Sequence record: MG592671.1
Direction: 5' to 3' (one strand)
Length of the DNA: 64,000 bases
A program made the translations under genes and the position numbers. The notes under the pieces are model-generated. The model did not search any database. It saw only the letters and a program-made list of their open reading frames with translations, and was not told where the DNA came from. Positions 5,991 to 59,816 of this stretch are shown in pieces. Each line of letters begins with the position of its first letter. Position 1 is the stretch's first letter.

Positions 5991-8900
5991 TTAGAATCCA
6001 ATTCTAATATTGTTTACTGTTAGTGCATCGATTATATTAACCTCATTAACACTAGCTGTGTTCACAAATACTTGATCTGGCTCTGCGCTAATCTCAAATA
6101 AAGTGCCAAACTTTGAAGAGCTATTAGACGGAACGATAACTACTGATGCTATATCAGTAACCATTTTTTGATGTATATATGCTGCTAGTTCCGTAAAGAA
6201 AAAGCTTTCGCCGAAATCCCAGTTATCAACATCAAAAAAGGTGTTAGTTAGCGATATAACTTGTTGACGAATTTCGTCATCGCTAATTGAAGATCCTTGA
6301 GCTCGCACTACGCTAAATGTTGCTTGGTAATCTTCCTCAGCACCAGCACCGAATAACGGAATATACCTTGCACTATGCCAAATAACAGTGTCACTTATAG
6401 CCTTAATATCCTCAACCTCAGTAAATGTCTCTCTTAATTCAGTAGATGTTGGAGGCGCTGGTATTGCTATTGTAGTATCGCCGGCCGCCCATGCAACAAC
6501 TTGATCATTGTATGCTGTTGTTAACACATAAATGTCATGAATGTTGGTTATAGCTGGATCTATTCTGTGATTACTTGGAGCAAAATGTTTCCATAAAAAA
6601 TGGAGACTTATGCGTCCTTCATGATGTAGAATATTATCAACCTCTGTCATATTATACGCGTCTAAAGAAGCTATATCATTATATATGGTATTCATAATAT
6701 CAATAGTTACAAGAGCATTTGTTTCATCAATTGATGATGTGATTTTATAATATTTGTAGTCTACTTCATTATCAGGAATAAATGCAAATATAGTTCCCTC
6801 GGACCCGTATACTAATTGTCGCTTGCCGTAAGTTTCAGTAGGTTCGGTGTAGTTAGAAAGAATAAAGAACTCTACTAATGAATCGTATGTAATACGTTCT
6901 GTCTCATCACGTCTAACTAGCGTGAGATCCATGTACGATTCAGTATTATCATCGTTTCTACGCCAAAACACATCCTCAGATGCACCTCCTCCTAAAATAC
7001 TTTCCATTAAGCTAGGATTTAGTGGATTATTAAACAAATCTAATGTAGGTGCAACTTTAACTCTAGTGTAATCAGTATAACCATCAATCTGATACACATT
7101 CGCAGCTATATCTAAATCAGAATCCGAGTTGTACCCTAAACCTGAGTTGAATGGATCATGATTGGAGCGAAGGATTTTTATAAGATCACTTTGTGCTAAA
7201 CCAGTGTTAATATCTGGAACATCTTCTAATTTAGTAAAGTAAAAACCAATATTATCACCGTAAAATATGTAATCTATACCTGGTGATATAAAATCCCATG
7301 TTTTTGATGTATAATTGCATAAAACTACTGGATCATATATACTCGGCTCTGAACCATAAATTTTAGCCCAATTCGCAGGGTTAAAAGTTACACTAGTAAA
7401 ATCAGCAATAGCGATGTACAACGTTGTGCCATAACGAATCATGTCGTTTGTTTCATAGGATGTATTTTCTTCCCATAATCTAATATTTGGGTTTTGTGTA
7501 GGAACAAAAGCGTTTTCCCAATTTGACTCATTGAATATTAAGCCACTAGTGAACTCAGTAATACACTCATATACAGTTCCATCAACAACTACCTTTTGTC
7601 CTTGAGTATATGTAGTTAATGGCTCCCAATTACGAATAACATTAGATCCAACAAATACCCATTTAGAAAAATCAAATGTAGTATCTCCTGCATGAGCTTG
7701 GTCACATCTCCAAAGATCAGTTCCGTATATTACGAAATCCCCTTCAGTATATGGATTAGTGGTGCTCCAGTTATCGATAACTAATGGCAGATCTTCCCAT
7801 GTGTTGGATGTCCAAGTTGCTATTTGTGATGCAGTGACTGGGATTGTGTTCCAAGTGCTACTTTCTAAATCGTAAGTTAGACCAAAGTTTTCACTTTGTT
7901 CAAGCTTAGTGATAATTCTAGCAATCTCAGTAGAATTAAAAATACTTCGTAAATCTGGAAAATACTGAATTAACTGCCAATTAGCACTGCTTACTGCGGT
8001 ACTTAAAGAATATTCACCAGTAGCTGAATCATAGCTGTTGATGCTACTCCAAACTCGTTGTGTTGAATCGTTTGTGTTTTCAAAAAGAATAACAGCTCCT
8101 GGTCCGATGACAGGAGTAAAATCAGTCACAACCGGTGAAAATTTACCATATAATCCATACGGAGTCTTTCCTGGAGTTGGCTCCCACAATACTGATTCAC
8201 TAACCTGTACTAAGTTTTTTCTGTTTAACTCAGTTGTGTTATTATTCCAATAAATTCCATCATCGCCAGTTTCTTGATAAAGAGTTTTAGTGCTAAATTC
8301 TGATATGATAGGTTGGATTTTATTAATAATCACACTTTCCCATGAATTTAATGTAGGTAATATCTCATTAGTTTGCTGTATGGCATGATCATTGTACAAT
8401 ACACCATACTCAGAGAAGACATCCACATTTTGATATTTCCCTGTAGGATCATTTATGTCGATAAAACGAGAATGACCGCTATATGTTCGGTTAACTGCTT
8501 TGGATTTTAACACGAGATTGCCTTGTTGCAATGGCCCAATGTTGTAGTCTTCACCAGTAATTAACCTATTTTGCGTATAGTAGTTTTGTGGAGCTCTAAC
8601 TCGAATTTGATCAATAGTTTCTTGCGCTTGGGCATTTTGAACTTGATATTGCAAACTAAACTGCATATCTAGACTTTTTTGAGCGTTTGGCTCACTGGCA
8701 ACTGTATACGAGTAACTAACGCTGTTATTTTGAATATCATTAGTCCTAATAGTATAGCTCAGTCCATTTGATGTTCTATACCATATACGGAATGTTCCGC
8801 GTGGAACAGTGCCACTTAGTGAATCAGGGAACCTTATTGATATCTTGTCACTATCATTAGTTATAACTGAAAATATCTTAGTAACTTGTTTATCAATACT

Positions 8901-14240: not shown

Positions 14241-14249
14241 TGTTATAAT
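14241..14249 (+). promoter_or_regulatory. Early/middle promoter motif TGTTATAAT (representative copy)
   Basis: Identical 9-mer also at 19048, 37092, 40329, 43756, 48261, 49874, 53426, 59048, 62951, each just upstream of a non-structural gene. Confidence 0.8.
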
Positions 14250-45304: not shown

Positions 45305-47095
45305 ATGAAACCAGCAAAGCAAGACGCAGCTAGACTAAAAATACATAACGATTATAGACAGCGTCGTCCGTTAGATAAAGGACTTGAAGCACAAACTGTT
45401 GATCTAACAGTGAATCAAAAAGATTTTGCAGTGCATTTGCCTGCGAGCATGGAGATACCATTCAATATGACTCGCTGGGGTGAGAATGAACAAACAGGCC
45501 AACGTTGTGTTGATTTTATGCAAAAAGATAACGGTGCGTTTTACTATAATTGGTCATTGTACTCCGCTGGTCATGCAAAGAATGTGCCAACCCTAATTAA
45601 GAAAGATTTGTTTATCAACAGGGATCCTGATGGTATCTTGTTTGGAGATTCTGGCGGATTCCAAGCAGCAGTTGGATCAGGAGTGCATGGAGACATGGAT
45701 TGGTCACATATCCCGTCAGTGGATGATTTATGTCAAAAAACACTAGATTGGCTAGAAGCGACATCTAACTATTCAATGATTCTCGATTTACCAACATTTG
45801 TGTTAGGTAAAAATGATAAGATTGTATCTCACGAGCAATGCCTACAGCAGACAATGTATAATATTGAATACTTTCTAGCGCATCGAGAGCCAGGTAAAAC
45901 TAACTTCTTGAATGTACTACAAGGCCTTGATGAGCACGACACTGATGAATGGTATAACGCTGTTAAGAAATTTAATAACCCTGAAACTGTACTAGATCAA
46001 GAATATTACTACATTCCATTAGCACAAATGCCAAACCCCATTGAGCCTAAAGAGGTTGCTAAGCCAGAAAAGCTCTCTGAAAATAGTTCTTTAGCTGAGG
46101 AAGAGAAATTTAAAGAAGATGAGAAAAAGTACAAAAAGTATCGAGTCGAGTTGAATTTATATAAAAAGGCCTTAAAACGCAAACCGGAAACTTTAGCTAG
46201 TATTGTTGATATTGACGGTTTTAAGTACATTAAGGCAAAATCACCATGGGTAAAAAAGTTCGGTTCTAACACAAAGCTAGGAGACCGAGCACTTGAAGGA
46301 TGGGCAATGTCAGGACACATGGTACATAATGTTGATTTAGCGTTACGTCAATTCTGCATTTTATTGCGTGACGGGAACATCGATGATCGACAACACTGGG
46401 TACACATGCTAGGATTAGCAACTATGAAAGCTGCTGTAACGCTAACAGCGATACAGCGTAAGATTCGAACTCTGCCTGGTTGTGAAAACTTCGTCATTAG
46501 TTATGATAGTTCAAGCGCATCACAATTTATGCAGTTTGGCAAGATGATTATCGGAGCATACTCTGATCCAGTATCTAAGGTGGCTACATTCACGCTATGG
46601 AAGCCACCAGCAGACTATGGTTCGTGCGGCTCTAAGCAGTTAATTAAAGATTCATTAGCATACCATGATGCTAATCAGCCTAAGGAAAAGGAACTTAGGA
46701 CTGATTTAAAGAAAAATGAGATACGATTTGAAACTTACGTGATGAATAATATCAGTGTTGGTGATTTATGCTATAAGTTACCCACAGAGCCAGGAAATCG
46801 CCCGTGGGATACAACATCTAATAGTTTTGTTTACTGTCAAAATGTAGAAGCTATTATTCGTAGTTTTCAATGGATTAACGAAATGGCAGATGCTGATAGG
46901 ACAGATGTAGTAGAGCCGGAACTACTTGATTTTAAAAACAGAATCATACATGAGATTTTTTCTGATCCAGATCCAGTACAGGCAGTGACGCACTACCAAA
47001 CTATAATTAGGCCACTGTTCGCAAAAGAGATTATACCTAATAAGTGTAGTTCGCATCACAATGTTCTAAATAACAATGATTTATTTGGGTGGTAA
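45305..47095 (+). CDS. dpdA: tRNA-guanine-transglycosylase-like DNA-modifying enzyme (DpdA, probably DpdA2-type)
   Basis: TGT-fold motifs FGDSGGFQ, MILDLP, NVLQG, GWAMSG, HMLG, SYDSSS; no TGT CxCxxC zinc site seen; clustered with que genes. Confidence 0.8.
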   Translation: MKPAKQDAARLKIHNDYRQRRPLDKGLEAQTVDLTVNQKDFAVHLPASMEIPFNMTRWGENEQTGQRCVDFMQKDNGAFYYNWSLYSAGHAKNVPTLIKKDLFINRDPDGILFGDSGGFQAAVGSGVHGDMDWSHIPSVDDLCQKTLDWLEATSNYSMILDLPTFVLGKNDKIVSHEQCLQQTMYNIEYFLAHREPGKTNFLNVLQGLDEHDTDEWYNAVKKFNNPETVLDQEYYYIPLAQMPNPIEPKEVAKPEKLSENSSLAEEEKFKEDEKKYKKYRVELNLYKKALKRKPETLASIVDIDGFKYIKAKSPWVKKFGSNTKLGDRALEGWAMSGHMVHNVDLALRQFCILLRDGNIDDRQHWVHMLGLATMKAAVTLTAIQRKIRTLPGCENFVISYDSSSASQFMQFGKMIIGAYSDPVSKVATFTLWKPPADYGSCGSKQLIKDSLAYHDANQPKEKELRTDLKKNEIRFETYVMNNISVGDLCYKLPTEPGNRPWDTTSNSFVYCQNVEAIIRSFQWINEMADADRTDVVEPELLDFKNRIIHEIFSDPDPVQAVTHYQTIIRPLFAKEIIPNKCSSHHNVLNNNDLFGW

Positions 47096-47122: not shown

Positions 47123-48235
47123 ATGTTTAACGAATTATTTGATTTCAATGATAGATATCGTAGCACTACATCTGATGAATTAGCAGACCAGATAGATAAG
47201 TATTTGACAACAACTAATAATCCTCCACTTAAGAAATACCAAGTTATGAGTACTGATTATGGTGCTGAATGGGAAATTGCAGACATTGACCGCAGTTGTA
47301 CGTTACCAGAAGGGCTAACTTGGGATGGCAAAGATCAAACAGTAATGAATACTAATGGCATTGCAACTGACCCGCACCTTAACTCTGAAATTAGAACATG
47401 GAATTATGGTGGTGAAATGAACACCAAGCCATGTAACACTATTGATGAAATAGTTGAGTTGTTTAAAACACTACTACGCAATCAACCAGAATGTACTGTT
47501 AATAACTCGTGTAACTTGCATAATCACTATAGGATTCCAGGATTGGACGTGGATGGATTGAAACGCGTCGTATCCTATTATTATGTCTATCGAGATGAAA
47601 TGATTGAAGTATCAGACTATATCCCTACACCTAGCGAGCAAGGGTATAACGCATCAAATTGCTCAACGAGCGATTTAAAGATAGTTGAAGACCGCTACAA
47701 ACATCACACTAAGCCATTAGGTGGGTCGAGACACGGAGATCTTCCAGAGTTTGTTCTGCTGAATAAGCTATTAGCAGAAGATGAAGAGTCATTCCACCAA
47801 GCAAGTGTTATTACACAAAGTGGGGTTGATACTTTAGATGCTAATGCTGCTCGAGCTAGTATTAACACGTGGCAAATGCGTAAATCTCGATCAAAAGAGC
47901 ATGCTGACATTGAATATGAGAAACGACCGTTTGCTGAATCTGGGACTATTGAAATGCGAATGCATCATGGAACAACTGATGTTGAAAAATACAAAAATAG
48001 TATTATTTGGGACATTAACATCTTAAACGCAGCCTTGAACACTGGTGAAACCCCACGTGAGATATTTGATCGTTTATGGGAAGGAAAATCCCAAAAAGAC
48101 GTTCTCCCAACATACATCCCTGTTGATTTAGAAAAATATAAAATCTTCAAGATGACTAAAAATGATGGATCAAACGCACGTAGGTCACTAGTAAAGGCCA
48201 CAATTAATGATCTCAAAAACACAGGCAAAATTTAA
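47123..48235 (+). CDS. Putative amidoligase (COOH-NH2 ligase, glutamine-synthetase-like fold)
   Basis: DYGAEWE, GGEMNTKP, NNSCNLHNHYRIP, SINT, TIEMRMHHGT match the GxExE / E..P / SCxxHxH / TxExR..GT pattern. Confidence 0.75.
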   Translation: MFNELFDFNDRYRSTTSDELADQIDKYLTTTNNPPLKKYQVMSTDYGAEWEIADIDRSCTLPEGLTWDGKDQTVMNTNGIATDPHLNSEIRTWNYGGEMNTKPCNTIDEIVELFKTLLRNQPECTVNNSCNLHNHYRIPGLDVDGLKRVVSYYYVYRDEMIEVSDYIPTPSEQGYNASNCSTSDLKIVEDRYKHHTKPLGGSRHGDLPEFVLLNKLLAEDEESFHQASVITQSGVDTLDANAARASINTWQMRKSRSKEHADIEYEKRPFAESGTIEMRMHHGTTDVEKYKNSIIWDINILNAALNTGETPREIFDRLWEGKSQKDVLPTYIPVDLEKYKIFKMTKNDGSNARRSLVKATINDLKNTGKI

Positions 48236-48297: not shown

Positions 48298-49197
48298 ATG
48301 AGTATCGATAAAACTAAAGAACAGGCTAGCAAATTTCTTGGCAATGATGTTGAATATAAAGATCAATACGACAAGAGTTTATTAGTACCTGTTGAAAGAG
48401 TGCATAATCGCACTAAGTACGCTATCGAAGAGAATAACCTGCCGTTTGTAGGGTTTGACACTTGGAATGCTTTTGAAGTATCGTTCCAGTTAAAGAACGG
48501 GTTACCAGTCGCAGCAGTAGCTAAGATTAGCTATCCTTGTAACACCCACAGTATTATTGAATCAAAATCCATTAAGTTATATTTGAACAGTTATAACATG
48601 ACTAAGTTCGACATGACTAAAGGCGAAGCGTTGACGTTTGTAGGAGATCAAATTGCCAAAGATCTAAGTGAGATTTTAGGCGGCGATGTAGATTGTACTT
48701 TACACGTTAATGAGTTTGACGGCCCAGAGCAAGTTTTTGACACAAGTGAATTTACTGATATTGAGCAATTAGTTGACGGTGAGCACATTATTTTTGATCA
48801 ATATAATGAAACACCTGATATTCTAAAGAAAAAGCGCGGGAAAGGCGGATACATTGCAGTCTCTACTAGTTTACTTCGCTCTAATTGTCGTATTACTAAT
48901 CAACCAGATTGGGGTGATGCATATATTATTATGGATGGAGATTCTCTTCCAACTATGGAATCATTACTCCAGTATATTGTGTCTTTCCGTAAGGAATCGC
49001 ACTTCCATGAAGAATGTTGCGAGATGTTATTTAAACGACTTATGGACAAGTTTAATCCTGATGAGCTGATGGTAACTTGCTTATACACACGCCGTGGTGG
49101 CATAGACATTAATCCATCAAGAGCTACACACGAGTATTTGCTTCCGGAATTGCTTGCTGATACAGAGATTTTAACAGCTAAGACTATGCGTCAGTAA
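48298..49197 (+). CDS. queF: preQ0 (7-cyano-7-deazaguanine) reductase, bimodular gammaproteobacterial type
   Basis: IIESKSIKLYLNS, LRSNCRITNQPDWG, HFHEECCE, RRGGIDINP. Confidence 0.95.
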   Translation: MSIDKTKEQASKFLGNDVEYKDQYDKSLLVPVERVHNRTKYAIEENNLPFVGFDTWNAFEVSFQLKNGLPVAAVAKISYPCNTHSIIESKSIKLYLNSYNMTKFDMTKGEALTFVGDQIAKDLSEILGGDVDCTLHVNEFDGPEQVFDTSEFTDIEQLVDGEHIIFDQYNETPDILKKKRGKGGYIAVSTSLLRSNCRITNQPDWGDAYIIMDGDSLPTMESLLQYIVSFRKESHFHEECCEMLFKRLMDKFNPDELMVTCLYTRRGGIDINPSRATHEYLLPELLADTEILTAKTMRQ

Positions 49198-49243
49198 CTA
49201 CTACCTAAGGGGCTAGGTAGGTCCCTTATATTAAGGAGACATT

Positions 49244-49873
49244 ATGTTTAACCTAGAGTACAATATAAAAACATTAAGTTGTTTTTCTTTGTTCCATATA
49301 TTCATTATTGCATTGTCAAACTATGCAGTGCAATTCCCGATTAATTTGTTTGGGTTCCATTCAACATTAGGCGCTTTCACCTTCCCGTTTATCTTTTTAG
49401 CAACTGATCTCACTGTTCGTGTATATGGCGCACAAGCTGCTCGCAAGATAATTACTATAGGCATGCTTCCTGCACTTGTTGTGTCATATATAGTCAGTAT
49501 TGTATTTTTTAATGGCGACTATCAAGGACTTCAGGGATTGTACGAATTTAACACGTTTGTATTCCGTATAGCTCTTGCTAGTTTTGCAGCTTATACAATT
49601 GGACAGGTTTTAGACATTGTAGTATTCAACAAATTACGTGACTTGAAAACATGGTGGGTCGCGCCAGCTTGTTCTAATGTGTTTGGTGCTGCCATTGATA
49701 CGATTGTGTTCTTTAGCATTGCATTTTACATGAGTTCAGATGCATTTATGGCAGCTAACTGGGTAGAAATTGGCATTGTTGACTATTTCATAAAAATTGC
49801 GGTTGCTTTGTTAATGTTCCTTCCGTTATACGGAGTGCTACTAACAGCGATATCGAAGCGTATTCACAAGTAA
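49244..49873 (+). CDS. yhhQ: preQ0/preQ1 transporter
   Basis: Multi-TM; FPFIFLATDLTVRVYG, RIALASFAAY..GQVLDI.VFNKLR, WWVAP..S..FG..IDT. Confidence 0.92.
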   Translation: MFNLEYNIKTLSCFSLFHIFIIALSNYAVQFPINLFGFHSTLGAFTFPFIFLATDLTVRVYGAQAARKIITIGMLPALVVSYIVSIVFFNGDYQGLQGLYEFNTFVFRIALASFAAYTIGQVLDIVVFNKLRDLKTWWVAPACSNVFGAAIDTIVFFSIAFYMSSDAFMAANWVEIGIVDYFIKIAVALLMFLPLYGVLLTAISKRIHK

Positions 49874-49933
49874 TGTTATAATTAAAGTGTAGCCTAGCTA
49901 CACTTTAATAATCTGCGTAATAGCAGCCGGGAC

Positions 49934-49967
49934 AGCGGACCGTAACCCCGCTATATAAATTCAGGAG
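49934..49967 (+). ncRNA. preQ1-I riboswitch-like element (variant) overlapping the queC RBS
   Basis: Stem AGCGG/CCGCT, 9-nt loop ACCGTAACC, A-rich tail ATATAAATTCAGGAG ending in the RBS. Confidence 0.5.
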
Positions 49968-49974
49968 AAAATAA

Positions 49975-50736
49975 ATGAACTTAAAAGAAGCACTTGCTAT
50001 ATTACCAGAAACAAAAAATAATGTTGTATCTGTATTGTCTGGTGGTTTAGACAGCACTATCATGACTTATGTACTTGTCCATAAGTATGGAGCTAGTAAC
50101 GTCTTTGCACTATCATATAACTATGGGCAAAAGCAATCACTTGAGCTAAAGAAAGCTGAAGAAACATGTAACGCTTTGGGAATCCAGCATAAAATCATAG
50201 ATATTGGTTTTTTGGGCGACATTGTATCACCCGTTTGCGCAAACATTGCCACATCTGATGTAGCTATGCCAACCATCCATGAAGTATTAGGTGACCCTCA
50301 ACCACCATCATACGTTCCATACCGAAACTTAATTCTCAATAGTACAGCAATGGCATTTGCTGAAACTAACAACGCATCGTATATTTTTACAGGGTTGCAA
50401 GTTCATGATGAGTACGGCTATTGGGATACATCGCAAAAATTTGTTGATTCATTAAATGCAGTGTCATCATTAAATCGTATGCATAAAATTGAAGTTCGCG
50501 CTCCATTTTCAATGCTATCTAAATATGAGGAAATTAATATTGCTACTGAGTTAGGTAATGTGGATTTTACTAAAACATTAACATGTTATGATCCAAACAA
50601 CTTAGGACATTCATGTGGAGTTTGTCCTAGTTGCTCTGAGCGTATTAAAAACTTTATGCTATCTGGGATTGCTGATCCAATCAATTACTCGATTGATATT
50701 GATTGGGACAGTGGTATCAAACAACATAAAAAATAA
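49975..50736 (+). CDS. queC: 7-cyano-7-deazaguanine synthase
   Basis: VLSGGLDST, SYVPYRNLI, TCY...CGVCPSCSER. Confidence 0.95.
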   Translation: MNLKEALAILPETKNNVVSVLSGGLDSTIMTYVLVHKYGASNVFALSYNYGQKQSLELKKAEETCNALGIQHKIIDIGFLGDIVSPVCANIATSDVAMPTIHEVLGDPQPPSYVPYRNLILNSTAMAFAETNNASYIFTGLQVHDEYGYWDTSQKFVDSLNAVSSLNRMHKIEVRAPFSMLSKYEEINIATELGNVDFTKTLTCYDPNNLGHSCGVCPSCSERIKNFMLSGIADPINYSIDIDWDSGIKQHKK

Positions 50737-50768: not shown

Positions 50769-51383
50769 ATGTGTGGTATATTTGCTTCTAAATCAAAAGA
50801 AAAATTTATTGAGTTAATGGAACTGAATGCGTATAGAGGAACGTTTTCTCATAGTATTGCTTGTGTTGATTTAACAACATCCAGCATTGTAGATCTTATT
50901 AAAAATGTTGGTCCGTTAGATGTCAACTCCATTCCTAATATTCCTAATGTTTACTATATAGGCCATGTGCAGGCACCGACAACGCAGGATGGGATGTGTG
51001 ACGCAAATATACATCCTGCGGTTGAAAACAACACATATATGTGGCATAATGGCATCATAAAAGAGAAATGTATTAGCGAGCTACAAAAAGAAACAGGTAT
51101 AGATAGTAATTGGGATACGCTATTACTACTGTCTTATATCAATAATAATCACAGTTTATCAGAAGTTGATGGAACGTTTGCATGTGTTGTAATCGACAAA
51201 AGTATTAAAATTTTCAGGAATGCAATATCCCCAATGTTTATTGATGATGAGCTCAACCTAAGCTCAGTTAGATTCAAAAACGCAAAACCACTAACACCTA
51301 ATGTTATACACAATATTATTGATAATACCATTGTTGAAACGGATAATCACTTCGTAACTAAAAACAACCCATATAATCTATAA
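50769..51383 (+). CDS. Class II (Ntn) glutamine amidotransferase, stand-alone
   Basis: N-terminal MCGI, NAYRG, GHVQAPT, WHNGII, WDT, DGTFA. Confidence 0.85.
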   Translation: MCGIFASKSKEKFIELMELNAYRGTFSHSIACVDLTTSSIVDLIKNVGPLDVNSIPNIPNVYYIGHVQAPTTQDGMCDANIHPAVENNTYMWHNGIIKEKCISELQKETGIDSNWDTLLLLSYINNNHSLSEVDGTFACVVIDKSIKIFRNAISPMFIDDELNLSSVRFKNAKPLTPNVIHNIIDNTIVETDNHFVTKNNPYNL

Positions 51384-51392
51384 TATCAAGCT

Positions 51393-51425
51393 ATGCGGTA
51401 AGTAATCCCGCATTAAAAAAACTAC
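51393..51425 (+). ncRNA. preQ1-I riboswitch-like aptamer upstream of folE
   Basis: Stem ATGCGG/CCGCAT, loop TAAGTAATC (U first, C last), tail TAAAAAAACTAC as in class I preQ1 aptamers. Confidence 0.65.
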
Positions 51426-51464
51426 ATCCAAAACATATTTTGGATCAAACAAGGAAAAATAAAA

Positions 51465-52331
51465 ATGTGCGATAATCATAAAAGTCAAGATGTACAATTA
51501 ATGGAAAATATTCTCAACGCGCTAGATGGTATCAATCTATCCGCAGCAGTGCAAGACGTATCGTCGTTAACTCCAGGAAATCTAGAAGACGAAAGATTAT
51601 TCATGGAAAAAATGATTAGCATTCTCGATAATGAATCTAAAAAAGCAACTCATGAACGAATTCGAGAGCGCATTCTAGAAGCTGATGCTAAGTTCCATGC
51701 TAATTCTAATATTGCAGAATTTATTAATGATGGTGAAATTGATGAGCTTATTGATGAATGTACTGTAGCATTTGAGAAAGTATTAGATTGTTTGATTATT
51801 GATAGAGAAAATGACCCTAACTCGATGGATACTCCACGACGTTTAGCTAAGATGTACATCTTAGAAACAATGAGCGGTCGATTTACTCCAGCACCTAAAG
51901 TAACAGCATTCCCTAACACGCATACAAACCGATCAGCCGGCTTTAGCGGCCTGTTAGTGGTTAAGACTGAAATCATCTCAATGTGTTCTCATCACCACCA
52001 GCCAGTAAAAGGCACAGTATACACTGGCATCATTCCAGGCGAAACAGTTTTAGGTTTATCAAAATATAGTCGAATTGCGCAGCACTTAGCAAAAAGAGGC
52101 ACGTTACAAGAAGAACTAGCAGAGGATATTGCTCAGAAAGTTATGGAAGAAACTGATTCTCCATCAGTTGCTGTCTATATCGAAGCCACTCATGGTTGTG
52201 TGACACACCGCGGTGTTATGGCGCACGACTCCACTACTCAAACAACAGTAGTACATGGTGAATTTATGTCAGATGGAACTCTTAGAAAGGAATTCCACGA
52301 CAATATCATGTATCAAAAATTAAACAAATAA
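51465..52331 (+). CDS. folE: GTP cyclohydrolase I
   Basis: DTPRRLAKMY, SMCSHHHQP, GLSKYSRI, LQEEL, HGCVTHRGV. Confidence 0.95.
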   Translation: MCDNHKSQDVQLMENILNALDGINLSAAVQDVSSLTPGNLEDERLFMEKMISILDNESKKATHERIRERILEADAKFHANSNIAEFINDGEIDELIDECTVAFEKVLDCLIIDRENDPNSMDTPRRLAKMYILETMSGRFTPAPKVTAFPNTHTNRSAGFSGLLVVKTEIISMCSHHHQPVKGTVYTGIIPGETVLGLSKYSRIAQHLAKRGTLQEELAEDIAQKVMEETDSPSVAVYIEATHGCVTHRGVMAHDSTTQTTVVHGEFMSDGTLRKEFHDNIMYQKLNK

Positions 52332-53420: not shown

Positions 53421-53488
53421 TTAAATGTTATAATAAGTTATACAAAACAGACAGAGTTAGCTCTGTCTTTAATAATATAAGGAACATT

Positions 53489-53794
53489 ATGGGAGTAAGT
53501 TTTTACTCATGTAGTGCTTGTAATGAAGCAGTATATGAAGAATATATTAGATCATGTGAATGTTGTCAAGAAGAGATATGCTCAGATTGTGCAGGGTCAA
53601 GTAGTCAATATGGTGATGATGATCTTATGAATGATGATTATGAGTGGCTAGAACATAATTGCCCGTATTGTAATGGCACTGTGATAACTGACGCTGAGAT
53701 TATCAACTACTTATTTAATCACCAAATTGATCGAGATCGAGAAGAAGTAATGGAAGAATTCCATATCCATAGAACATTGGAGAAAGGTAAATGA
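53489..53794 (+). CDS. Cys-rich (zinc-binding) small protein
   Basis: CSAC, CECC, CSDC, CPYC. Confidence 0.65.
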   Translation: MGVSFYSCSACNEAVYEEYIRSCECCQEEICSDCAGSSSQYGDDDLMNDDYEWLEHNCPYCNGTVITDAEIINYLFNHQIDRDREEVMEEFHIHRTLEKGK

Positions 53795-54690
53795 TTAGGG
53801 AAAAACAATATCGCTATAGTGAGATTTTCGGAGAAACCTTTCAAGGAGAGGGGAATCACACCGGGAAGAATACTTTGTGGCTAAGATGGTTTGGATGTAA
53901 CAAAACCTGCTATCTCTTTGGTCAAGATAAAGAGAATCCCGTTCCTAAAAAAGAAATGTATTACGAAACTATTGATATCACTAATATAACTGATATTCAA
54001 CAGCTACCTATACAAAATATGGGATGTGACAGCTATCATAGTTGGCACCCACGATACCGTCATTTAGCACACAAAGACACAGCCAAAGACTTAGCGCAAA
54101 AGTTAATAGATCTTAATAAGAACGAACATAACCCAGAAGGGCTTTTTATTCATCCTAAATCAGGACAAGATATCCATTTATGCTTTACTGGCGGTGAATC
54201 AATGATGGCTCAAGATGGCATTATTGATGTGCTAAACGCGTTGATTTCCGTTGGTAATTATCCTAAAAATGTAACTATTGAATCTAATGGAACAGTTAAT
54301 CTAAGATCTCATCAAGACTGGACTAACATGTTTAATCAAGACATTACTTTATTTTGGAGCATTTCACCTAAATTAGAATCAGTTAGCGGAGAAGCTTGGG
54401 ATAAATCAATATGCCCGGATACGCTATACGGTTACAAGCAGATTGTTGATAACGGACAGTTGAAATTTGTTTGTGATAATTCAGATGAATCTTGGGAAGA
54501 GATTGAAAAAGCTATTCTTGAATACCAGCAACGTGGGGTTACTTGGCCAATCTGGATTATGCCAGAGGGCGCAGAGCAGTCAGCACAATCAAGACATGAT
54601 GCAGATATTGCAGTAGAAGCAGTCAAGCGCGGATATTACTTTGCATCAAGAGTACATGCTACTGTATTTGGTGCGGTCGCTGGTAAGTAA
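53791..54690 (+). CDS. queE: 7-carboxy-7-deazaguanine synthase (radical SAM)
   Basis: ETFQGEG, RWFGCNKTC...CDSYHSW, CFTGGES, TIESNG, ISPKL, RVHA. Confidence 0.92.
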   Translation: MIREKQYRYSEIFGETFQGEGNHTGKNTLWLRWFGCNKTCYLFGQDKENPVPKKEMYYETIDITNITDIQQLPIQNMGCDSYHSWHPRYRHLAHKDTAKDLAQKLIDLNKNEHNPEGLFIHPKSGQDIHLCFTGGESMMAQDGIIDVLNALISVGNYPKNVTIESNGTVNLRSHQDWTNMFNQDITLFWSISPKLESVSGEAWDKSICPDTLYGYKQIVDNGQLKFVCDNSDESWEEIEKAILEYQQRGVTWPIWIMPEGAEQSAQSRHDADIAVEAVKRGYYFASRVHATVFGAVAGK

Positions 54691-59024: not shown

Positions 59025-59153
59025 GTGTGATACACTCCTATATTAAATGTTATAATGTAATATAACAAAAAATAAAAGCAAGAATGAAATAGTCAAGATA
59101 GAGAACCCACAGCCAAACGCATGTGGCAATATTTAGAATTAGGAGATAAAAGG

Positions 59154-59816
59154 ATGTTTGAGATTAGTAAGCAGATTTCACTCTGTTATGGGCACCGAGT
59201 CTGGTCACAAGACTTAGAAGAGGAATTTTGTGCATCTGGAGACACTGCCTGTAAGTGCAAGCACCAACATGGTCATCAAGGTGAGATTCAAGTCTTTCTA
59301 GAAGCTTCTGATGTAAATCATCAAGGCTTTGTGACAGATTTCAAACATCTAGGCTGGCTTAGAGATTTTGTAGATAATTATTTTGATCACAAAATGATTT
59401 ATGACCTAAATGACCCAGGTCTAGGCTTCTTGTGTAATGGGATAGTTCGTATGGGCTTTGCTCAAGATTACAAGATCAATAATGAGATAGTTCGTTTTGA
59501 AAAACCAGAAGCATTTGAACTATACAGTCAATGGGACAATTTGATTATTCCGATGAAAGAGATTACAGTTGAAGGAAAAACAGCTGGATATGTGCTTGAT
59601 TTGGAAGGTTTCGAGGATCAGTTAGAATCGTCACACTATGAGATTCTAGAAGGTTACTTCTTTGTTAATTTTGTTCCTACTTCTGAAAATCTTTGTAAGT
59701 TCATTCACGGGCTGGCACAAGAAAAGATGAAAAAGATTGGCGTTACTGTATCAAAAGTCCTGTGGCAAGAAACTCCTAAATCACAAGCAACTTTCATCGC
59801 CAAACCATTGAAATAA
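59154..59816 (+). CDS. queD: 6-carboxy-5,6,7,8-tetrahydropterin synthase
   Basis: CYGHR, CKHQHGH, TDFKHL, DHKMI, PTSENL, ETP; start moved to ATG 59154 (RBS AGGAG/AAGG). Confidence 0.9.
   Translation: MFEISKQISLCYGHRVWSQDLEEEFCASGDTACKCKHQHGHQGEIQVFLEASDVNHQGFVTDFKHLGWLRDFVDNYFDHKMIYDLNDPGLGFLCNGIVRMGFAQDYKINNEIVRFEKPEAFELYSQWDNLIIPMKEITVEGKTAGYVLDLEGFEDQLESSHYEILEGYFFVNFVPTSENLCKFIHGLAQEKMKKIGVTVSKVLWQETPKSQATFIAKPLK

Follow-up and report, generated by a model that had tools for sequence, protein, structure and literature searches.

Does the short hairpin that stands directly in front of a phage queC gene sense a 7-deazaguanine? The question is raised by a stretch of 64,000 nucleotides (nt), hereafter the window, which matches Vibrio phage 2.275.O._10N.286.54.E11 (MG592671.1) at 100% identity; this phage, with a genome of 349 kb, was isolated on Vibrio cyclitrophicus. 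A first-pass annotation had proposed that positions 49934–49967 of the + strand (element A) form a variant of the class-I preQ1 riboswitch (preQ1-I) that sequesters the ribosome-binding site of queC and may have an altered ligand specificity. Element A reads AGCGG-ACCGTAACC-CCGCT-ATATAAATTCAGGAG, in agreement with the letters and coordinates first given, and ends 7 nt 5' of the queC start codon, ATG at 49975; C40, G64 and the like are shorthand for 49940, 49964 and so on. Around it lie queF, yhhQ, queC, a glutamine-amidotransferase-like gene, folE, queE and queD, a cluster that encodes the whole preQ1 pathway, and queF-bearing related Vibrio phages have dPreQ1 and mdPreQ1 in their DNA (PMC10516641). 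Element A is real, conserved and under selection. It is part of a cis-regulatory leader, most likely a divergent translational switch that senses a 7-deazaguanine.

A 17-nt pattern that the elements before queC and folE have in common, as the first-pass annotation had stated, GCGGNNNGTAAYCCCGC, occurs only twice in the window, at 49935 and 51395 (0.09 copies expected; one of 100 shuffles reaches two), and the second copy lies 53 nt 5' of folE. Relatives were collected by protein searches, which yielded a QueC of 72% identity (contig L323), a set of long-form FolE proteins and contigs L407–L415, and by a DNA-pattern scan, which added L417 and L418. The contigs from L407 on belong to T4-like phages (marked by DNA_pol_B, Gp23 and Portal_T4) with the gene neighbourhood of the window. 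In the related contigs queC and folE each stand behind a small hairpin whose stem covaries and whose loop is conserved; L417 and L418 have leaders of both types. The eight queC-type loops are ACCGUAACC (window), ACCGUUAUC, AACGUUAUC, AACGUCAAC, AACGUCACC, UACGUCAUC, UAGUCAUC and AUUUCAUC, and the seven folE-type loops are UAAGUAAUC (window), UAGUUUAAUC, UAGUAAUC, UAAUGAAC, UGAUGUUUCC, UGGCGUAACC and UGGCGUCACC.

A covariance model (R1) was made from 11 relatives on other contigs, leaving out the window and L323, and was run with filters off. On both strands of the window it finds two significant sites, the folE element (51392–51424, 31.8 bits, E-value 3.3e-5) and, second best, element A (49932–49964, 25.8 bits, E 0.001), the next match scoring 14.8 bits; on L323 it gives 21.1 bits for the queC leader and 23.1 bits for the folE leader. 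On a background of 1.49 Mb from other phage sequences, made up of IMG/VR queC and folE loci, KVP40, 1.081.O and a further 50 kb of the 2.275.O phage, the model scores at most 20.1 bits. Within 151 kb of related contigs, all 14 matches of the family model at E ≤ 0.05 are queC or folE leaders. That the queC and folE elements are sisters, as first supposed, is upheld by the detection of both with one leave-out model, and conservation across related phages by the score of element A above the whole background.

The family is so far confined to a clade of large T4-like marine phages, where it always stands directly 5' of queC or folE. Most queC genes of the QueC relatives in IMG/VR (61–71% identity) follow directly behind another open reading frame (ORF) with no leader, and in KVP40-type phages, including KVP40 and 1.081.O, plain hairpins occur and the family motif was not found. 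Exact-pattern scans of IMG/VR were set aside: nearly all matches of the shared 17-mer are chance or coding (those in L282 and L283 are alike, in an uninterpretable context), and a pattern specific for element A gave a single chance match in GC-rich coding DNA.

The stem of the hairpin, P1, is paired in all 70 cells of a 14-copy alignment (slid controls, 34–51%), with changes on both sides in three of its five pairs. Its closing pair is G-C in 13 copies and G-U in one, and the last loop base is C in 15 of 15 elements. The second pair is G-C in the window and C-G in L323. Covariation across related phages, a check first proposed with the element, is thus seen for P1, which keeps its pairing in 14 of 14 copies through compensatory changes. 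Between the window and L323 the loop is 79% and the tail 83% identical, and the leader from P0 to the AUG 77%, compared with 43% for queC third codon positions. The 5-bp hairpin of element A is present in the minimum-free-energy fold and absent from the centroid.

Conservation extends upstream. An accessory hairpin, P0, and an AGCCG linker (49913–49931) are common to the window, L323, L407, L410, L411 and L414, the P0 loop being usually GUAANA, and the conserved unit, as judged from sequence, begins about 23 nt 5' of the coordinates given for element A. In the linker, CGN is complementary to loop NCG, where N:N is G-C (window, L323), U-A (L410, L411, L414) or a mismatch (L407); this covariation concerns a single pair, probably reflects one evolutionary event and may serve as a lead only. 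A contact of the upstream CGG with loop CCG may compete with any pairing of the loop with the ribosome-binding site.

The reading that we place at about an even chance is that of a phage-specific, divergent preQ1-I-like translational OFF switch, which would exert feedback on queC and folE and of which the queC copy in the window would be a re-wired or weakened form. Element A is the 3' half of a conserved queC leader that runs through P0, the AGCCG linker, P1 and the A/U-rich tail to the Shine-Dalgarno sequence. The family has the layout and size of class I, with a predicted helix of 3–6 bp between the loop and tail bases that overlap the ribosome-binding site or lie just 5' of it. The pseudoknot of loop and tail would be stabilised by a 7-deazaguanine that the pathway makes, preQ1 or preQ0; so stabilised, it would hinder ribosome binding and turn translation off, and the switch would so provide feedback on the precursor supply for phage DNA modification. 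If the window copy still switches, it must do so by a short contact between loop CC(G) and the GG of the Shine-Dalgarno sequence, as first proposed, or by the competing contact with the upstream CGG.

Weighing against this reading are features of the ligand pocket, of the loop-tail pairing and of the matches to curated models, given in this and the following two paragraphs, as well as two general points: hairpin leaders behind the promoter-like motif TGTTATAAT are generic in the window phage, and ligand binding, the identity of the ligand and the effects of the leaders on expression are predictions from sequence. In class-I riboswitches a strictly conserved specificity C stands just 5' of the P1 3' strand, and the base in front of it is U in type I and A in types II and III; U6 in L1 reads the N9-H of the ligand, A29/A30 end the A-rich L3, a G-C pair forms the pocket floor, the G O6 contacting the aminomethyl group, and P2 buries Shine-Dalgarno bases (PMC11625349). 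Element A has the 5-bp P1 with its G-C closing pair, the specificity C (C49947) and a site 5' of a queuosine-precursor gene. The base before the specificity C is C (loop ...AACC), not U or A; it is U in L323, and U, A and C all occur at this position within the family. The loop begins with A49939, not U, and the base before the tail C49962 is U49961, not A, in a tail, AUAUAAAUU, that is A/U-rich with five A in nine. The first-pass annotation had read these contacts correctly: the last loop C is kept, the first loop U replaced by A, and the A before the tail C by U. In the Escherichia coli type III aptamer U7C, A33-purine and C15U lower preQ1 affinity 35,000- to 64,000-fold, the changes at the equivalent U and A costing 35,000- to 39,000-fold (PMC10622847). 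The first loop base is A in six of eight queC-type leaders and U in all seven of folE type; A at this position is common to queC-type leaders and is therefore no mark of a special ligand switch in the window phage. The folE-type elements keep U6, the pocket floor, the C, and the A-run followed by C, and the folE element of the window has U as its first loop base, UC before the P1 3' strand and an A-run then C; leaders of the queC type have the floor and the C in common with class I. If element A binds a ligand, its pocket cannot be canonical, which would fit an altered specificity and, equally, no binding.

The pseudoknot first proposed for element A pairs loop CCG with tail C(A)GG and so buries the ribosome-binding site. 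The pairing is possible on paper (C40-G65, C41-G64, G42-C62, with A63 bulged), but the helix is at chance level: the best contiguous loop-tail helix is CC:GG with the Shine-Dalgarno sequence, which 83% of shuffled tails equal (p 0.83), and the P2 of the relatives uses another tail segment, UGAC/UAAC, absent here. In queC-type relatives loop GUNA pairs with tail UNAC in five of seven leaders tested, against 1.63 expected from shuffled tails (P 0.007, a value that ignores shared ancestry, as L409, L411 and L414 have one common tail). This P2 is (C)GUCA:UGAC(G), with GUUA:UAAC in L407 as a compensatory change from C-G to U-A; it has 4–5 bp, and its 3' strand ends 0–4 nt before the Shine-Dalgarno sequence. 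The other two of the seven, the window and L323, have tails with no complement to GUAA/GUUA; they read AAAUUC-AGGAG and AAAUUCU-AGGAG, like the AAAUUC-UGACGA-AGGAG of L411 minus UGACGA. The loop change from AAC to ACC, the source of the CC, also suits the upstream CGG contact. When all 15 elements are taken together, the complementarity of loop and tail does not reach significance (Fisher p 0.14), and the canonical 3-bp register of the folE type (after the A-run, for example UAG:CUA, AUG:CAU or GCG:CGC) is found in six of seven against 4.5 expected (P 0.19). The pseudoknot of element A is a candidate structure.

At gathering thresholds no Rfam family matches anywhere in the window. The Rfam PreQ1 model (RF00522), proposed as a check by the first-pass annotation, was run permissively on the 121 nt around element A (49870–49990) and gives no match there at E ≤ 10, and therefore element A is not a family member by the curated model. 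A permissive scan of the folE-type element of L411 likewise gives no RF00522 match, and the folE element of the window aligns with RF00522 end to end but at 12.5 bits (gathering, 39). Over the queC leader there are sub-threshold matches to freshwater-2 RNA (RF02980; 22.3 bits, E 0.086, gathering 49.9) and preQ1-II (RF01054; 14.6 bits, E 4.1, gathering 47), whose alignments rest on a generic hairpin and the stretch from Shine-Dalgarno to AUG, freshwater-2 leaving the middle hairpin unmatched; a preQ1-II riboswitch was rejected on its score. Membership of preQ1-I in the strict sense is contradicted by the curated model and by three residues; that element A works like a preQ1-I switch is plausible. 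Of the variant first proposed, the class-I layout and several hallmark positions hold for the family; in element A there is neither a match to RF00522 nor a P2 above chance level.

In T4-type phages several genes are controlled via small hairpin operators adjoining the Shine-Dalgarno sequence. Element A might similarly be the operator of a trans-acting phage translational repressor that co-regulates queC and folE, with no small-molecule sensing at the RNA level. The contigs are T4-like, one motif precedes two genes of a single pathway, as a common trans factor would need, a conserved loop and covarying stem suit a protein site as well as an aptamer, and Rfam recognises no riboswitch here. We consider this unlikely, because Pfam, PHROG and NCBIfam searches identified no candidate RNA-binding protein in the cluster, the invariant positions are class-I preQ1 hallmarks (specificity C, closing G-C, A-rich tail), and a loop-tail helix with a compensatory change is needless for a simple operator. 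Similarly improbable is a leader that senses nothing, in which P0 and P1 would stabilise or process queC mRNA and the likeness to an aptamer would be superficial or a relic left after loss of the P2 strand. Against it stand the loop and tail, conserved from the window to L323 at a distance at which synonymous sites are almost saturated, P1, kept through a G-C to C-G change, and the generic leader hairpins of the window, which reach at most 14.8 bits with the family model. It would explain why a promoter, hairpin, A-rich spacer and Shine-Dalgarno sequence also precede other genes of the window phage and of L323, why these two lack the UGAC(G)A tail segment and keep no significant loop-tail helix, and why the Shine-Dalgarno sequence is unpaired in the centroid fold.

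The queC-type leaders might also form a separate aptamer subclass for another compound (for example preQ0 or CDG) than the canonical-looking folE type of these phages, marked by A for U after P1, a 2-nt L2, the accessory P0 and a linker able to compete for the loop, with the window copy re-wired so that the Shine-Dalgarno sequence replaces the lost P2 strand. This appears quite unlikely; if true, a single phage would monitor two steps of its DNA-hypermodification pathway, each with one of two related sensors. An ordinary class-I preQ1 riboswitch with canonical contacts, too short for an Rfam score, is a very unlikely explanation of element A, which gives no RF00522 match and differs at two of three ligand-contact positions (A replaces U in L1, and U replaces A 5' of the tail C), equivalent changes abolishing preQ1 binding in the E. 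coli type III aptamer (PMC10622847); what speaks for it comes from folE-type elements, with their first-loop U, (U/C/A)C before the P1 3' strand and A-run then C, and from the end-to-end alignment of the window folE element. A chance hairpin next to a ribosome-binding site, to which the mere 34 nt of element A and the missing Rfam match might point, is scarcely conceivable: it is refuted by the R1 score (E 0.001) above the maximum of the 1.49-Mb background, by P1 covariation and by the conserved L323 copy with its compensatory change. The divergent preQ1-I-like OFF switch is the reading kept below, and the features on which it draws are collected with their neighbours in Table 1.

Table 1. Features of the queC and folE leaders and of the surrounding gene cluster (window coordinates).
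Feature	Position	Strand	Remarks
queF	48298–49197	+	Pfam QueF_N/QueF; NCBIfam QueF
yhhQ-like precursor transporter	49244–49873	+	Pfam Vut_1; directly 5' of queC leader
Promoter-like motif TGTTATAAT	49874–49882	+	extended -10; queC transcript
13-bp terminator-like hairpin	49881–49909	+	3' of yhhQ; in minimum-free-energy and centroid folds; overlaps promoter
P0 hairpin CUGC-GUAAUA-GCAG	49913–49926	+	RNAalifold consensus of six queC leaders; two of four pairs compensatory (CUGC/GCAG vs CUAG/CUAG)
Linker CCGGGAC	49927–49933	+	CCG invariant in six leaders; CGG complementary to loop CCG 49940–49942
P1 hairpin	49934–49952	+	AGCGG 49934–49938, 9-nt loop ACCGUAACC 49939–49947, CCGCU 49948–49952
P1 closing pair	G49938-C49948		C49947, last loop base, invariant
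A/U-rich tail AUAUAAAUUC	49953–49962	+	no UGAC/UAAC segment, the pairing partner of the loop in relatives
queC Shine-Dalgarno AGGAG	49963–49967	+	G64 and G65 the sole tail bases still able to pair with the loop (C41, C40)
queC (7-cyano-7-deazaguanine synthase)	49975–50736	+	regulated gene; Pfam QueC, E 1.6e-50; 253-aa ORF
Glutamine-amidotransferase-like protein	50769–51383		35% identity to KVP40.0125
folE element AUGCGG-UAAGUAAUC-CCGCAU-UAAAAAAACUA	51393–51424	+	
Hairpin AUCCAAAA-CAUA-UUUUGGAU	51426–51445	+	between folE element and folE Shine-Dalgarno AAGGA (51451–51455)
folE (GTP cyclohydrolase I)	51465–52331	+	Pfam GTP_cyclohydroI, residues 104–281 of 288, E 4.9e-38
QueE-like radical-SAM protein	53791–54690		
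queD	59121–59816		

The motif TGTTATAAT is likely a phage promoter with an extended -10, to judge from its distribution: there are 10 copies in the window, all on the + strand and all intergenic (2.0 expected; none of 100 shuffles reaches 10), at 14241, 19048, 37092, 40329, 43756, 48261, 49874, 53426, 59048 and 62951. The genes behind it include queF, queC, ORF 53489 just 5' of queE, and queD, and it also lies 5' of queC in L323, L407, L410, L411 and L414. The copy in front of queC makes it very probable that this gene is served by a separate promoter and has a leader of about 85 nt. The 13-bp hairpin downstream of yhhQ is probably not part of this leader; relatives have a hairpin in its place, but its sequence differs. 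The folE gene has no TGTTATAAT; two TATAAT hexamers stand there instead (51373–51378 and 51381–51386), with a predicted transcript start at the first base of the folE element. The hairpin that follows this element is possibly its expression platform. FolE has, in the window and in L323 and L407–L415, an N-terminal extension of about 100 residues with no Pfam match, the relatives being 286–385 residues long.

Type III preQ1-I riboswitches usually target yhhQ in gamma-proteobacteria (PMC10622847). The yhhQ leader of the window (49198–49243) can form two overlapping hairpins, CUACCUA...UAGGUAG and AAGGGG...UCCCUU, just 5' of the yhhQ Shine-Dalgarno sequence, and has no match to the family covariance model. 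In L323 the place of yhhQ is taken by an Acb1-family gene (L323:359-844; Pfam: anti-CBASS nuclease family), and another adjoins the deazaguanine cluster of L407 (6968-7462). Two ORFs just 5' of queF, 45305–47095 (596 residues) and 47123–48235 (370 residues), have no PHROG or NCBIfam match, and the second has a borderline match to Amidoligase_2 only; its identification as DpdA2 was rejected, as it has no similarity to the DpdA2-like protein of KVP40. Pfam, PHROG and NCBIfam searches of the window did not reveal the transglycosylase that is to be expected for DNA modification. Between queC and folE, L410:5825-6553, L411:5884-6618 and L414:780-1571 (minus strand) are ORFs on the opposite strand with faint marks of homing endonucleases (NUMOD3, SegE GIY-YIG), which set the two genes apart in these three relatives.

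Other hairpins precede genes of this pathway. At least 25 distinct IMG/VR phage contigs (L327–L404; for example L346:5961-5998 and L328:5963-6000) have a different motif directly 5' of folE, behind a TTGACA...TAtAAT promoter. It consists of a 4–7-bp stem with covariation at each of the four scored pairs (the contigs were selected by a 4-bp-stem pattern, so that 100% pairing arises by construction and the diversity of pair types does not), an invariant hexaloop AUCCNC, and a stretch (U)AAC(A)UCGGAG that leads to the start codon. The UCC of the loop can be matched with Shine-Dalgarno GGA as its complement, the top stem pair is C-G or A-U, unlike preQ1-I, and no Rfam family matches the motif. A third type of queC leader lies about 60 nt 5' of queC in L061, L066, L074 and L080 (match start 4001 in all four), with a covarying stem (ACGU, AGCGU/ACGCU, GGAU/AUCC), loop U(U/A)GCCUAU and tail ..AAUACC(A/U)GGCA; loop (U)GCC can pair with tail GGC(A), and a 32-kb Rfam scan gave no match. 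In L323 a hairpin, AAGCAGG-UUCCAAC-CCUGCUU followed by UAAAUUAAAAAAGGAA, stands at 6484–6530, 5' of a QueE-like gene (6528–7430). Its loop UUCC is complementary to Shine-Dalgarno GGAA, and it has UU after the 5' strand and AC before the 3' strand, as in type III preQ1-I; it scores 9.6 bits with RF00522, 30.8 versus 41.2 with DUF2815 RNA (RF03084) and 20 bits with the family model. The queE region of the window has a plain tetraloop hairpin only (53449–53468), 5' of a small ORF (53489–53794) that precedes queE. Permissive Rfam scans of the L323 queE leader and of one IMG/VR folE leader gave sub-threshold matches only, and one of seven IMG/VR loci (51 kb) gave nothing relevant.

Riboswitches have seldom been found in phage genomes, and the examples listed in a survey of 2017 are limited to c-di-GMP-I and glutamine (PMC5473149). 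For phage 7-deazaguanine genes, no account of riboswitch-like leaders was found in the searchable literature, and the word riboswitch is absent from two key papers on phage 7-deazaguanine DNA modification. If the OFF-switch reading is true, phages meter the precursor supply for DNA hypermodification by RNA sensors of their own, and the family supplies naturally varied ligand-contact positions in an aptamer that is among the smallest known. Its escape from the curated Rfam model points to a blind spot where viral aptamers are very short and contain indels.

Among known systems, the protein-bound operators of T4-type phages are short stem-loops a few bases 5' of the Shine-Dalgarno sequence, with one motif on more than one mRNA, and in this the leaders resemble them. 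They differ in that no repressor is identified, that the invariant positions match a small-molecule aptamer class, and that relatives have a covarying loop-tail helix. With the type II preQ1-I riboswitch, a translational aptamer of Thermoanaerobacter tengcongensis (RF00522), element A shares a hairpin and tail of about 34 nt directly 5' of a queuosine-precursor gene, a 5-bp P1 with closing G-C, a C adjoining the P1 3' strand on its 5' side and a tail rich in A and U. The pairing would also be similar if the register of the first-pass annotation is taken, in which a loop G faces a tail C, and loop CC faces the first GG in the Shine-Dalgarno sequence (PMC11625349). Compared with type II, element A has an A in place of the L1 U, a U in place of the A 5' of the tail C, and CC where AC precedes the P1 3' strand; it has an added P0 hairpin and conserved linker, no RF00522 match and a P2 without statistical support; its leader is phage-encoded and concerns modification of DNA, not tRNA. 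In type III, represented by the E. coli yhhQ leader, a pyrimidine-rich loop pairs with Shine-Dalgarno AAGG/GGA, UU follows the P1 5' strand and three G-C pairs are conserved, whereas the loops of the phage queC type, A(A/C)CGU(N)A(N)C, pair with UGAC/UAAC 5' of the Shine-Dalgarno sequence, a segment that the window copy lacks. The queC-type relatives resemble type III in that their helix ends 2 nt before the P1 3' strand, leaving an L2 of N-C comparable to AC, and in a tail between P1 and P2 that is A-rich and variable in length; type III controls translation via the Shine-Dalgarno region (PMC10622847).

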